Shown here: positions 1,548 through 6,623 of the stretch, piece after piece
How positions within the stretch are numbered: the first letter of the stretch is position 1
Layout: each line of letters opens with the position of its first letter
Source of the DNA: Podarcis liolepis
Taxonomy: Eukaryota
Reading direction: 5' to 3' (one strand)
Assembly (NCBI GenBank): GCA_965112155.1
Contig: OZ218098.1
Length of the DNA stretch: 64,000 nucleotides
The notes under the pieces: generated by a model
Database searches by the model: none
What the model was told of the DNA's origin: nothing
What the model saw: the letters and a program-made list of their open reading frames with translations, nothing else
Made by a program: the position numbers and the translations under genes

Positions 1548-1813
1548 TGTTAAGTCGTGGGTTGACATAGCAGCCGGCACAGCGATTTCTTCAAGTAGCT
1601 CTTTATTATGGTAAGCTGGAATAGAACTGACTGCGAACAGCTCAGCCGGCCTGTATTTATAGGCAGCCGGCTGTCAACACTGTAACCACAACAGCCCAGA
1701 GTTCCCGCCTAAAATAACAGACGCGGACCTGAGTGAAAACTATCTACAGACCTGAGTGAAAACTATATACAGTATCCCCCTGTTGGCCCAGGGTGAAACT
1801 ACACTACATAACA
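1548..1813 (-). repeat. 3' LTR of the Gypsy element
   Basis: TGTTAAG...CATAACA, same sequence as 6202-6467; minus-strand TATAAAT (1655-1661) and AATAAA (1602-1607); internal duplication GACCTGAGTGAAAACTAT. Confidence 0.95.
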
Positions 1814-1826
1814 CCCCTCCCCACCG
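1814..1826 (-). promoter_or_regulatory. Polypurine tract
   Basis: Minus strand GGTGGGGAGGGG directly abutting the 3' LTR. Confidence 0.85.
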
Positions 1827-1926
1827 AGATAAGGCGTTAGTTACAATCGTAATGGTTTCCTTATATACAGCACTACGCGTAATGGTTCAATTAAGCACAA
1901 AAGCATATCGGTTACATTTCCCATAC

Positions 1927-4900
1927 TTAGACCAACAGTGATACCTGTCCAACAACATAGTCCTTTAAATAAGTTGGGCGCTTGGAAACTCTGCCAGACC
2001 GCCGGGGACTGGTAGCCAAGTCCGGAGGGCCACACAGTTCTCGCTGAGGCTGTGGTGCGACCCTAGGTGGCGTTGGAACCAACTCCCCTGGATCCGCTGC
2101 TGTGGGTGGAGCCTCCGCAAGTGGAGTGGTCTGAGTCTGTTCTGAAACGGCTTGGTTCGGCTCCACGCTGGCAGCTTGCGAGGGAGGTGTAGGTGGGGCC
2201 TCGCCATCTGTACGTGTCTCTTCTGGAGCCGCAAGCGCAGTTGGGGGCACCTCGGTAGTGTCCAAGTCCCCAACCCTGCGCCTAAGCTGGTCTATGTGCC
2301 GTCGCCACAAGCGTCCGTCTTCGAGTGCCACCTGGTACGAGCGAGGTCCAGTGACTCCCACTACTGTGGCTGGCACCCAAGGGATGTCCCCCACATAGTT
2401 CCGGGCAAAGACCTGGTTTCCTGGGACAAATGACCGTGGTGTGTTGGCACAGCCTGGGGGTTCAGCCACGGCAAAGTCTGGGTGTAGCCGGTCGAGCGGT
2501 GACCTGAGGCGGCGGCCCATAAGCAGTTCAGCCGGACTCCTCCCTGTGGCCGCATGAGGGGTGATGTGTTGTACGAACAAGTATTCGGCGACCCGCTCAT
2601 GCCAGTCTCCCCGGTCCAGGCGCGCCAGTGCCTCTTTTGTCGAGCGCACCATTCTTTCCGCTTGCCCGTTGCTGGATGGATGAAAGGGTGCCGTTAGGGC
2701 ATGGCGGATGCCCAGTCCCAAAAGATACCGCTCAAACGTGCCTGACGTGAACTGCGGTCCGTTGTCAGAGACAAGGACATCAGGACACCCATGCGTTGCA
2801 AACAGGCCTCGCAGCACCCGGATGACAGCTTCGGTAGTGGTGGAGGGCATCAGGGCGACCTCCAGCCATTTGGAATAGGCGTCCACCACTACCATAAAGG
2901 TCCGGCCGTGAAAGGGGCCAGCCAGATCGATGTGCACCCTCGACCAGGGTGTCTTTGGCGTCTCCCAGGTGTGTCTCTTAGCTGCCGGTGGTGCAGGCCT
3001 CGACTCCTGGCACGCTTGACAGGCGGACACCCAGGCAGTGATGGCATCGTCCATATTAGGCCACCAGACGTAACACCGAGCCAACGCCTTCATTTTGACA
3101 ATTCCCGGGTGGCCAACGTGCAGAGCCTCCAGGACGCGCTGACGGAGTCCCTGGGGAATCACGACACGGTCTCCCCACAGCAGGCAGCCGCGATGAGCTG
3201 AGAGTTCATGTTGTCTGGTTGCGAAGGGCTGGAACTCCGATGCAAAAGGCCCTTGTGGCCACCCCCTCCACACCCAGTTGAGCACCCGGCTGATGGTGCG
3301 ATCATGGGCAGATGCGGAGGCCACAGTGGCAGCCGATACAGGCGCTGCCGGAAGATCCTCAATCAGAAGGAGCGATGAAGCTGGAGCCGGGTCTTCCACA
3401 AATGCTGGAAGAGGGCAACAGCTGAGGGCGTCGGCATGGCCCATCGATTTCCCCGGGCGATGGATGAGCCGGTAGTGGTAGGCAGCCAGGAAAACAGTCC
3501 ATCGCAGCATGCGTGGTGAGAGGACCGGTGGAGTTGGACGATCACCGGCGAGGAGGCCCAGGAGTGGCTTGTGGTCAGTGATGAGGTCAAAAGTCCTGCC
3601 ATAGAGGTATTCATGGAACCTCTTCACTCCAGCCACAAGTGCCAATGCCTCCTTGTCGAGCTGGCTGTAATTCCGTTCCGTCGGAGATAGTGTCCTGGAA
3701 AAGTAGGCGAGCGGTGCTTCTCTTCCATCTGGAAAACGGTGACTAAGGACAGCACCGATGCCAAAAGGTGAGGCGTCGCAGGCAAGGACCAGCGGCCTGG
3801 ATTCACTGTACTGTACCAGCACACTGTCTGAAGAAAGGAGAGCCTTGACCGCGTTGAAGGCCGCCGTCTCCCGATGACCCCAGGCCCAAGGCGTCTTAGT
3901 GCTAAGGAGTCGGTGAAGAGGCTCAGCCACTGTGGCTTTGTGGGGCAGGAACATGTTATAAAAGTTCAGCAGCCGCAGGAATGCCTGCAACTCCGTTTTG
4001 TTCTTTGGGGCGGGGGCCTGCTGGATAGCGCGGATCTTGGATGTGGTTGGATGAAGACCGGAGGCATCGATAAGATAGCCCAGGAACTCTACCTGTGGAA
4101 CAGCGATCTGGCACTTGTCCCTCTTTACCTTGAGCCCGGCCTCCTGGAACCTGGTCAGCACGGCACGGAGGCGCTCGAACAGCTGCTGGTGTGAGTCTGC
4201 AGACACCAAGACGTCATCAAAATATGGTACCACGCCCGGAAGCCCTTGCAGGAGACGCTCCATAAGGCTTTGGAAGATGCCAGGAGCCACACTCACCCCG
4301 AACTGCAAGCGGCGGCAACGGAATGCCCCCCGGTGGGTGACGATCGTCTGGGCTTCAGCAGTGGCATCATTGACTGGCAGTTGTTGATAGGCTTGGGCAA
4401 GGTCCAGCTTAGCGAAGACCTTACCCTCACCCAGGGAATGCAGCAGGTGTTGGACAACAGGAACCGGGTAAGCGTGCTGCTGAAGTGCCTTGTTGATCGT
4501 GCACTTGTAGTCAGCGCAGATTCTCACCGACCCATCTGGCTTGACAGGCGTGATGATGGGGGTTTCCCACTTTGCGTGGTCAACCGGCTCCAAAACTCCT
4601 TGGGCGATCAGTTTGTCCAGTTGTTCGTCCACCTTAGCCTTGAGAGCAAAGGGAACCCGGCGTGGCTTTAGCTTGATGGGGGCGACTTGTGGATCAAGGC
4701 TAAAGGAGATGGGCGTACCTGTATATTGGCCCAAGGTGCCGTCAAAAACCTCGGCAAAGTCTTTGACCAGACCCTCAGTCTCTGCGTTAGAGATGCAGTT
4801 GATGCCGGTGACTTCCAGGCCGAGGGCATCAAACCAGTCTAGCCCTAGGAGGCTTGGCCGCTGACCTTCGACCACCACCAACCGGAGCAGGCCCGAAAAA

Positions 4901-6006
4901 TCCTTGAAGGCGATCCGGAACCGGCCAACGCCTACCACGGGAATGTCGTTTCCCTGGTAGTCTCTCAGGTGTACGCGGTGAGAGTCGAGTTGCCTTTTGG
5001 ACACTCTGGGTACCAGTCTTTTGATGGAGCTCCATGACACGATGGACAGGGCAGACCCGGTGTCGATCTCCATGTCACATGGAGCTCCTTCAATGAGCAC
5101 CGTGACGTTCAGCTTGCGTCGCGTAGGCGAGTCGGTTTGGCCAATCGTGGTTCCAGACGGGCAGCGGCAGTTGGTGAGAGCGAAACAACTTTCCTTGGCA
5201 GACTGGAGTGAAGACTTGGACTTGCGAGTCGATGAAGGGGGGGTGTCAGACGGAGCTGATCGGCAGACCTTAGCGATGTGGCCCCTTCTGGAACACTTCC
5301 TACAGATGGCGTCTCTGAATCGACACTTGGCACGGGAATGGTTGCCTCCGCAGCCAGCACATTCCGGTTGGCCCTTGGACTTCTGTTGGAACTTCCTGCG
5401 CTCCCGCTTTGTCTGGTGCACGTCATTGTCTTCACTGGAGGATGCCTCCTCACTGCTGGCCTCTTCATGATGCACCGGAACTGGCTCCCTAGCAAGACGC
5501 GGGCTGCTGGACTTGCGGATCTCCTGGGCGGAGCGTTCAGCAGCTTCTGAGGCCACAGCCTCCTCAATGGCTTTCTGTAGCGTGAGGTCTGGCTTGGCTA
5601 GGAGGCGCCGTTGCAGATGGATGTCCCGGACCCCGCAGACGATTCGATCCATCAGGGCATCGTCTAAGTCTCGGAACTCACAGTGCATTGCAGCCTCCCC
5701 CTCTGCCTGGTTCCGGTGGTAGAACGCATGGCGGGCAGCAATCTTGGACGGCTTTGGTGCGTAGTGGTTGCGGAGCTTCTCTTGGATCGTGTCCCATGGT
5801 GTTGCCTGGACTGCTTCAGGCGCAACCAACGCTCGGGCCGTCTCAAACACCTCAGGCCCACAGAGGCTGAGGAATAGGCCCCGCTTCCGCTCCTGTGATA
5901 CTTCTGTCAGCTCGTTGGCTTGGAGGTAGCAGTCGAACCGAGCGAGGTAGGAGTCCCATGATTCAGAGGCTGGCGCAAAAGGCGGTAGAGGCACAAGTGA
6001 AGCCAT
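1927..6006 (-). CDS. Gag-Pol polyprotein, 1359 aa (Gag with two zinc knuckles, protease, RT, RNase H, integrase)
   Basis: Knuckles CAGCGGNHSRAKC and CRKCSRRGHIAKVC; protease IDTGS; RT LQFGV and YFDD; RNase H LACDASPFGIG and TDHKPL; integrase HVGH...CQAC, HIDLAG, SDNGPQF, GQAER; C-terminal RRSGRVSKRPTYLKDYV. Confidence 0.96.
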   Translation of the reverse strand: MASLVPLPPFAPASESWDSYLARFDCYLQANELTEVSQERKRGLFLSLCGPEVFETARALVAPEAVQATPWDTIQEKLRNHYAPKPSKIAARHAFYHRNQAEGEAAMHCEFRDLDDALMDRIVCGVRDIHLQRRLLAKPDLTLQKAIEEAVASEAAERSAQEIRKSSSPRLAREPVPVHHEEASSEEASSSEDNDVHQTKRERRKFQQKSKGQPECAGCGGNHSRAKCRFRDAICRKCSRRGHIAKVCRSAPSDTPPSSTRKSKSSLQSAKESCFALTNCRCPSGTTIGQTDSPTRRKLNVTVLIEGAPCDMEIDTGSALSIVSWSSIKRLVPRVSKRQLDSHRVHLRDYQGNDIPVVGVGRFRIAFKDFSGLLRLVVVEGQRPSLLGLDWFDALGLEVTGINCISNAETEGLVKDFAEVFDGTLGQYTGTPISFSLDPQVAPIKLKPRRVPFALKAKVDEQLDKLIAQGVLEPVDHAKWETPIITPVKPDGSVRICADYKCTINKALQQHAYPVPVVQHLLHSLGEGKVFAKLDLAQAYQQLPVNDATAEAQTIVTHRGAFRCRRLQFGVSVAPGIFQSLMERLLQGLPGVVPYFDDVLVSADSHQQLFERLRAVLTRFQEAGLKVKRDKCQIAVPQVEFLGYLIDASGLHPTTSKIRAIQQAPAPKNKTELQAFLRLLNFYNMFLPHKATVAEPLHRLLSTKTPWAWGHRETAAFNAVKALLSSDSVLVQYSESRPLVLACDASPFGIGAVLSHRFPDGREAPLAYFSRTLSPTERNYSQLDKEALALVAGVKRFHEYLYGRTFDLITDHKPLLGLLAGDRPTPPVLSPRMLRWTVFLAAYHYRLIHRPGKSMGHADALSCCPLPAFVEDPAPASSLLLIEDLPAAPVSAATVASASAHDRTISRVLNWVWRGWPQGPFASEFQPFATRQHELSAHRGCLLWGDRVVIPQGLRQRVLEALHVGHPGIVKMKALARCYVWWPNMDDAITAWVSACQACQESRPAPPAAKRHTWETPKTPWSRVHIDLAGPFHGRTFMVVVDAYSKWLEVALMPSTTTEAVIRVLRGLFATHGCPDVLVSDNGPQFTSGTFERYLLGLGIRHALTAPFHPSSNGQAERMVRSTKEALARLDRGDWHERVAEYLFVQHITPHAATGRSPAELLMGRRLRSPLDRLHPDFAVAEPPGCANTPRSFVPGNQVFARNYVGDIPWVPATVVGVTGPRSYQVALEDGRLWRRHIDQLRRRVGDLDTTEVPPTALAAPEETRTDGEAPPTPPSQAASVEPNQAVSEQTQTTPLAEAPPTAADPGELVPTPPRVAPQPQRELCGPPDLATSPRRSGRVSKRPTYLKDYVVGQVSLLV

Positions 6007-6182
6007 GATTCCGATGCCGGCGTGAAGGGCGATGGATGGAACACAGTGCTCTAGCCAGAACAGTCAGCTCTGAACTGGTTCTGCCCAGTGATTTCGCTCA
6101 GTGATTTCGCTCTGTGATTCAGCTCAGTGATTCAGCTCAGTTCAGAGGCTGGCCGCATCTGGCTGTGCTCTGGTGTCCATCC

Positions 6183-6200
6183 ATCCCACCTTCGTCGCCA
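6183..6200 (-). promoter_or_regulatory. Primer-binding site, probably tRNA-Ser(GCT)
   Basis: Minus strand TGGCGACGAAGGTGGGAT, 1 nt from the LTR; complementary to ATCCCACCTTCGTCG+CCA, the 3' end of vertebrate tRNA-Ser(GCT) as I recall it. Confidence 0.85.
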
Positions 6201-6201
6201 G

Positions 6202-6467
6202 TGTTAAGTCGTGGGTTGACATAGCAGCCGGCACAGCGATTTCTTCAAGTAGCTCTTTATTATGGTAAGCTGGAATAGAACTGACTGCGAACAGCTCAGC
6301 CGGCCTGTATTTATAGGCAGCCGGCTGTCAACACTGTAACCACAACAGCCCAGAGTTCCCGCCTAAAATAACAGACGCGGACCTGAGTGAAAACTATCTA
6401 CAGACCTGAGTGAAAACTATATACAGTATCCCCCTGTTGGCCCAGGGTGAAACTACACTACATAACA
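6202..6467 (-). repeat. 5' LTR of the Gypsy element
   Basis: Matches 1548-1813 with no mismatch found by eye; followed on the minus strand by the PBS. Confidence 0.95.
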
Positions 6468-6623
6468 CCTGTGTTACACCCAGAACATAACACAGGCTAC
6501 CATACTAAAACACACAAATCCAAACAAAAACGGGTTGCTAAAAACTTTCTTGGATGTCCACAAAGAATAAACAAGCAAACACAAATATTCTTGCAACACT
6601 TCCAAACAGGATCTTGAGTTCTG

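Follow-up and report, generated by a model that had tools for sequence, protein, structure and literature searches.

A predicted leader-spanning hairpin that includes the primer-binding site of a recently active gypsy-type LTR retrotransposon in wall lizards

The 64-kb window (the whole stretch of DNA that was analyzed) contains a complete and intact LTR retrotransposon at 1548-6467, which lies on the minus strand along with all of the features described below. The 5' LTR (6202..6467) is 266 bp long, runs from TGTTA to TAACA, and contains a TATA box at 6315-6308 and an AATAAA motif at 6261-6256. The 3' LTR (1548..1813), which is also 266 bp, follows directly after a polypurine tract, GGTGGGGAGGGG, at 1825-1814. 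The two LTRs are 100% identical, with the match to the 5' LTR listed as 1548-1815, and a 5-bp target-site duplication, ACAGG, was read directly on both flanks (6468..6472, with the second copy at 1543-1547). A single gag-pol ORF of 1359 aa (1927..6006) contains no frameshift and begins with a start codon in a strong context (aucAUGg). Pfam domains were found in the order RVT_1 (489-644), RNase H (709-843), and integrase (950-1110), which is the gypsy order, and the Gag part contains two CCHC knuckles with Cys and His columns that were invariant in an alignment of 14 proteins. The LTR pair with its target duplication, the RT-RNase H-integrase arrangement, and the presence of both a primer-binding site (PBS) and a polypurine tract are those of Ty3/gypsy elements, and the element is a gypsy-type LTR retrotransposon that has been recently active. 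We found neither a second copy nor a related element in the window by tblastn and blastn, no tRNA genes in the window or in 24 loci, and no match in Rfam. Within U3 of the LTR, we also observed a 23-nt tandem duplication at 6380-6426, and a depth peak with loose ends indicated that 6400-6450 is common to other, far more abundant LTR families.

A single gag-pol ORF without a frameshift is a defining feature of the Mag lineage and fits the 1359-aa ORF found here. Together with protein matches named K02A2.6-like and distant relatives that share the PBS type, this sequence evidence suggests that the element probably belongs to the Mag lineage. The best protein match was a Podarcis muralis cluster of 121 member sequences with 98% identity, indicating that the element family is multicopy and young. 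Proteins named K02A2.6-like came next, with 50-62% identity in lacertids, snakes, and geckos, and squamate relatives identified by protein included one from Zootoca at 85% (P0002) and three others at 54-62% (P0003, P0017, and P0018). The stretch was present in 20 sequencing runs from nine studies. For a survey of variants, we placed the reads and contigs of four runs on 5900-6480 at a likeness of at least 80%, and in this survey the element family was abundant in two organisms. Stranded RNA-seq reads on the leader were approximately 5:1 in the sense of element transcripts.

The PBS, TGGCGACGAAGGTGGGAT (6183..6200), begins 1 nt past the end of the LTR, is contiguous over 18 nt, and is unique in the window. 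All 18 nucleotides are complementary, without a mismatch, to the terminal 18 nt of tRF3b-SerGCT-1, the 3' end of tRNA-Ser(GCU) as printed in PMC11551137. Primers of the Mag lineage are tRNA-Ser or tRNA-Leu (PMC3286476), a rule that the PBS of this element fits. The initial annotation had read the region as an LTR-retrotransposon leader with a tRNA-Ser PBS, and the LTRs, the ORF, and the 18/18 tRNA-Ser(GCU) match bear out this assignment. We also noted that CAGAGCACA in the 5' arm of the leader (6164-6172) could base pair with UGUGCUCUG, which belongs to the variable arm of tRNA-Ser(GCU), again as printed in PMC11551137. This match could represent an extended primer contact; we roughly estimate that a 9-mer match of this kind would arise by chance with a probability of approximately 0.02, and the comparison tRNA is not from a lizard.

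Copies of the family carry two versions of the PBS. Positions 6189 and 6191 vary together, and the second version, TGGCGACGAGGATGGGAT, makes up approximately 50% of the depth in DNA and is present in 73% of RNA reads. It matches another published vertebrate tRNA 3' fragment, and we take it to correspond to a second Ser-GCU isodecoder. In addition, position 6182, which is the first base past the 18-nt PBS and lies opposite tRNA A58, showed three alleles and a 1-nt insertion. In retroviruses, the primer tRNA serves as the template for the plus-strand PBS as far as the modified A58. Two PBS versions combined with a variable 6182 are the pattern predicted by primer-templated copying and favor a tRNA primer that can be either of two isodecoders. 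The PBS would be rewritten from whichever tRNA-Ser isodecoder primed the previous cycle, and such rewriting would account for the two versions. PBS toggling and hypervariability of 6182 thus look like the trace that reverse transcription has recently left in the germ line, a firmer result than a regulatory switch in the leader, as discussed below. The reads record an active family of tRNA-Ser-primed elements in wall lizards.

In this lizard family, the stretch between the PBS and gag has lengthened to approximately 175 nt and is built of a 13-nt tandem array flanked by the arms of an imperfect inverted repeat. The leader RNA is accordingly predicted to fold into a long rod (6017..6201) with a 5' arm at 6201-6138, an apical region at 6137-6078, and a 3' arm at 6077-6017. 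The array (6086..6141; 4.3 copies by TRF; direct-repeat family D1) makes the rod apex; Mag-like elements with tandem repeats in the 5' UTR have already been reported (PMC3286476). For the 201-nt RNA of 6204..6004, the minimum free energy (MFE) was -89.6 kcal/mol relative to a mean of -62.0 (standard deviation, 4.9) for dinucleotide shuffles, which corresponds to a z of -5.63 with 0 of 200 shuffles as stable; a separate set of shuffles gave a z of -6.3. The inverted repeat described in the initial annotation therefore exceeds chance, and the hairpin was retained both in the 297-nt context of 6300..6004 (z of -4.09), which that annotation had proposed to fold against shuffled controls, and in a 339-nt context extending into gag. 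The predicted pair table contains 68 pairs from 6201:6017 upward and is imperfect, with many 1-nt bulges. Three long perfect blocks occur within it: 6031-6040/6176-6185 (within the feature labeled I1), 6053-6059/6158-6164 (7 bp), and 6068-6077/6138-6147 (I2). The first and last of these agree with the earlier reading, and the 7-bp block had been placed one base off, at 6159-6165.

The basal part of this rod includes the PBS. Of the 18 PBS nucleotides (6200-6183), 14 form UGGCG/CGCCG, GAAGG/CCUUC, and GAU/AUC helices with a segment of the 3' arm at 6017..6033, the "anti-PBS," which has bulges at 6023 and 6030. The GAAGG/CCUUC and GGCG/CGCC pairings noted earlier inside the PBS are thus present in the pair table. 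The rod ends at 6017, just before the gag AUG at 6006 as had been noticed, with an intervening gap of 10 nt rather than 11 nt, and the AUG is single stranded in the predicted fold. When we paired the PBS 18-mer with the last 45 nt before the AUG, the duplex of -18.1 kcal/mol was not significant alone (z of -0.79; p of 0.2). Significance resides in the whole rod, and the PBS/anti-PBS segment is its weakest part.

Because the PBS lies within the basal stem, hairpin formation and primer annealing exclude each other by construction, as the initial annotation had proposed. Forcing the PBS open raised the MFE to -66.6 kcal/mol, a cost of approximately 23 kcal/mol, and a perfect tRNA:PBS duplex yields -36.2 kcal/mol with the cost of tRNA unfolding not subtracted. 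Since the opening cost and the duplex gain are closely balanced, a chaperone would matter. Alternative folds of the basal helix were also predicted. The MFE structure pairs 6201-6196 with 6017-6022, whereas the centroid of the 297-nt fold instead pairs U5 with 6015-6021. The sequence GCCGGC, a palindrome, occurs in U5 (6227..6232) and at the base of the 3' arm (6016-6021), and the predicted U5:pre-AUG helix between these copies removes the basal helix of the PBS with the 3' arm and frees PBS positions 6200-6197, which is a possible toehold for the primer in this structural model. As the two GCCGGC copies are able to pair mutually or between two RNAs, they are also a candidate dimer contact.

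Four AUGs lie upstream of gag in U5 and the 5' arm (6222, 6184, 6180, and 6158), and none occurs between 6156 and the gag AUG. The AUG at 6222 in U5, 19 nt before the rod base, opens uORF1 (6142..6222), which has 26 codons, spans both the PBS and the 5' arm in full, and has its stop codon at 6144-6142 near the rod apex. The initial annotation had suggested a ribosome shunt. We rejected a shunt of the classical layout, as uORF1 runs into the hairpin rather than ending before its base. On this arrangement, gag-pol translation by reinitiation after a uORF or by helicase-assisted scanning is possible.

We folded natural variants of the family singly, except for the naturally linked pair at 6189 and 6191. 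Nearly all other copies differ from the window at 6075 and 6173. The majority allele at 6173 changes a C-G pair to U.G with no energy cost, and that at 6075 changes a C-G pair to C.A at a cost of 6.2 kcal/mol. Substitutions at 6182 each break a G-C pair (+6.6 kcal/mol), and the commonest allele in RNA reads weakens the stem. In copies with the second PBS version, one pair becomes A.C and one G.U, yielding a fold of -85.5 kcal/mol, and no compensating variant was listed in the four-run survey at 6028 and 6026, the 3'-arm partners of 6189 and 6191. This pattern shows that the 3' arm does not follow the PBS. Among further variants, wobble pairs were kept at 6141 and 6191, pairs were improved at 6154 and 6085, and one pair was broken at 6149; two-sided compensation in the rod was not seen among the family variants of the four runs. 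Variant density was alike in the arms, loop, and gag, indicating that the family is too young for a verdict from covariation. As separate observations, sense RNA-seq depth was approximately 45 to 50 on the 5' arm and approximately 20 to 24 on the 3' arm and gag, with a step around 6080-6100, and five contigs of run X8 cease to match the window below 6098. Derivative copies or short transcripts with only the LTR, PBS, and 5' arm may therefore exist.

We compared the leader with those of distant relatives retrieved with the 14-protein alignment, comprising 3 loci of a viral collection and 80 metagenome loci at 30-49% amino acid identity. A TGGCGAC-type PBS was found beside the LTR end in 41 of these distant relatives, indicating that a tRNA-Ser primer is widely shared among them. 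Their leaders differ widely in length (10 to 510 nt). Fifteen of the 41 have the gag AUG only 10-30 nt downstream of the first PBS base, too close for a hairpin to fit. An AUG at this spacing (in L001, L005, L013, L017, L021, L028, L039, L044, L047, L074, L075, and others) would place an annealed tRNA on or beside the start codon, so that priming and translation would clash without any hairpin. Most of 22 leaders of 55-510 nt folded no better than shuffles, with z near 0, and only two had a comparable fold. In L046 (648-737; z of -3.5, and -3.9 in a second calculation), 14 of the 18 PBS bases find partners 3-19 nt upstream of the AUG, and in L055 (212-589; z of -2.4), 16 of the 18 PBS bases close a 300-nt domain. 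The PBS of L046 is the same 18 nt as the second lizard version, and the leader sequences of L046 and L055 are unrelated. These modeled PBS-closing folds could hint at recurrent selection. In L057 (z of -3.9), the PBS is not part of the fold. For 20 relatives, pairing of the PBS 18-mer with the last 45 nt before the AUG gave a mean z of 0.01, with p below 0.05 in one. Taken with the folds, this result indicates that an anti-PBS is not a general feature of these distant relatives.

These findings lead us to favor, at roughly an even chance, a reading in which the rod is a lineage-specific leader domain and masking of the PBS is a structural consequence of the rod rather than the mark of a conserved, co-evolving tRNA mimic. 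On this reading, the rod has to be opened before priming can occur and is likely to impede scanning. It would then act as a kinetic barrier that the two zinc knuckles of Gag would melt for tRNA annealing, with strand exchange probably beginning at the 5' end of the PBS, which the alternative U5:pre-AUG GCCGGC helix would partly free. We infer that the rod would also slow scanning ribosomes and that gag-pol would be made at a low level, either through scanning assisted by a helicase or through reinitiation once the uORF across the 5' arm has been translated.

The initial annotation had proposed that the 3' arm is a selected anti-PBS that mimics the tRNA 3' end and forms a bistable switch between translation and packaging or priming, perhaps also shielding the PBS from silencing by 3' tRNA fragments. 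Such a switch would explain why the PBS sits in a stem with two mutually exclusive states and why the predicted MFE and centroid differ in the basal helix, and the PBS-closing folds of L046 and L055, which are of independent sequence, would fit as well; a preprint (bioRxiv 10.64898/2026.01.22.698655) reports that 3'-tRFs repress LTR elements via the PBS. We nevertheless consider this proposal unlikely, as the change in PBS version is uncompensated, the majority alleles at 6075 (+6.2 kcal/mol) and, in RNA reads, at 6182 (+6.6 kcal/mol) break pairs of the stem, PBS/pre-AUG pairing is at chance both in the window (z of -0.79) and in 20 relatives (mean z of 0.01), and 15 of 41 relatives are practically without a leader. 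Compared at the sequence level, the distant relatives and the family copies give no sign that masking has been selected as a switch. A more elaborate version, in which the 3' arm would have been selected as an inexact replica of the 3' end of tRNA-Ser that keeps the PBS closed until Gag accumulates, thereby timing the passage from translation to priming and hiding the PBS from silencing guided by 3'-tRFs, and in which the same device would have arisen independently in L046 and L055, is decidedly doubtful. Selection could also be absent altogether. An inverted duplication, produced for example by template switching of reverse transcriptase, might have been fixed in a master copy and tolerated with no role, which would suit a rod that is lineage specific. 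The window copy pairs better than the family majority, implying that pairs are being lost without visible cost, and the five X8 contigs that diverge below 6098 may keep the 5' arm and lack the 3' arm. Against such neutrality, a rod of -90 kcal/mol over the PBS and beside the AUG should have consequences, and the rod has been kept in a transcribed family represented by the 121-member, 98%-identity cluster; we hold a rod without any role to be improbable.

Other functions would concern the leader domain itself. Retroviral packaging signals lie between the PBS and gag, which is where the rod sits, and the rod with its 13-mers might be a Gag/NC site equivalent to Psi in which the GCCGGC palindromes initiate dimers. 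Four repeated motifs in a partly open apex, the two palindromes, and the two CCHC knuckles of Gag are consistent with a role in packaging or dimerization, which we view as rather doubtful since relatives in which the AUG follows the PBS by 10-30 nt must rely on different sequences for packaging. Processing of the imperfect 60-bp hairpin by Drosha or Dicer into miRNA-like RNAs or siRNAs is very improbable. The long imperfect stem has regular 1-nt bulges and RNA depth on the 5' arm is approximately twice that on the 3' arm, but the depth step has simpler causes, such as copies that differ below 6098, and Rfam returned nothing. Finally, the geometry would be right for a cut 3'-arm end to prime the minus strand on the PBS without a tRNA, similarly to Tf1, as it is the 3'-terminal part of the arm that is paired to the 5' end of the PBS. 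The PBS matches the tRNA at 18 of 18 positions and the arm at only 14 of 18 with bulges, it toggles between tRNA-matching versions with no matching arm variant listed, the position opposite tRNA A58 is hypervariable, and a cut at this site would separate the leader from gag. With an imperfect downstream partner set against a perfect tRNA match, we rejected self-priming, the probability of which we put at next to nil.

In HIV-1, U5 can pair with the gag start region (U5:AUG), and the predicted centroid of the lizard element pairs U5 with its gag start region as well. The PBS of HIV-1 lies largely in a loop, whereas that of the lizard element is a strand of the basal stem of a single predicted leader-spanning rod. 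The HIV-1 leader adopts alternative folds, and annealing at the PBS shifts the fold in a manner linked to dimerization and packaging (PMC3854529 and PMC6534999). In yeast elements, the Ty1 5' UTR is largely base paired and potentially inhibits scanning (PMC5454406), and contacts of the Ty3 primer tRNA reach beyond the PBS (PMC5371799). Ty1, with its TIPIRT domain, and Ty3, with its bipartite PBS, resemble the lizard element in that structured 5' regions join translation start, packaging, and priming. Their structures, in contrast, are a pseudoknot or long-range 5'-3' contacts with tRNAiMet as the primer, and the lizard element has a simple rod, tRNA-Ser, and a contiguous 18-nt PBS. In Tf1, as mentioned in PMC5371799, the first nucleotides of the transcript are the partner of the PBS and replace the tRNA. 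The lizard PBS also pairs with the RNA of its own element, but it does so imperfectly with a downstream partner and is fully matched to a tRNA.

The leader hairpin of the plant pararetroviruses CaMV and RTBV, for which an inverted-repeat origin has been proposed, supports a shunt that needs a short uORF with its end immediately upstream of the hairpin, and the stem does not include the tRNA-Met PBS (PMC5902531). Both these viruses and the lizard element have a very stable elongated hairpin (here, -89.6 kcal/mol), upstream AUGs, and a main ORF just past the base (here, an AUG at +10 nt). In the lizard element, however, uORF1 opens 19 nt ahead of the base and terminates at the apex, and the stem contains the PBS. 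Within the Mag lineage, Bombyx Mag and mosquito Mag-like elements share a tRNA-Ser or tRNA-Leu PBS with the lizard element, some with tandem repeats in the 5' UTR (PMC3286476), and the 15 of 41 relatives with the gag AUG directly behind the PBS differ from the lizard leader. Structured leaders that join priming, packaging, and translation are thus known already, as are long leader hairpins, and a PBS that forms the basal strand of a leader-spanning rod is a variant of these. We found no description of such a rod for the Mag lineage in open papers. If the rod gates primer annealing, it would provide a simple natural case in which one helix couples translation, priming, and perhaps escape from tRNA-fragment silencing. 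Because this vertebrate family still appears to be active, gating by the rod is testable with reporters.

The protein comparisons also revealed a cluster from the tick Rhipicephalus microplus (P0020; 41 members) with 52% identity across 99% of the ORF, a level no lower than that of many lizard families, with proteins of Trichinella and Trichuris next at approximately 45%. On sequence similarity, the tick match may reflect parasite-host horizontal transfer of this element group.
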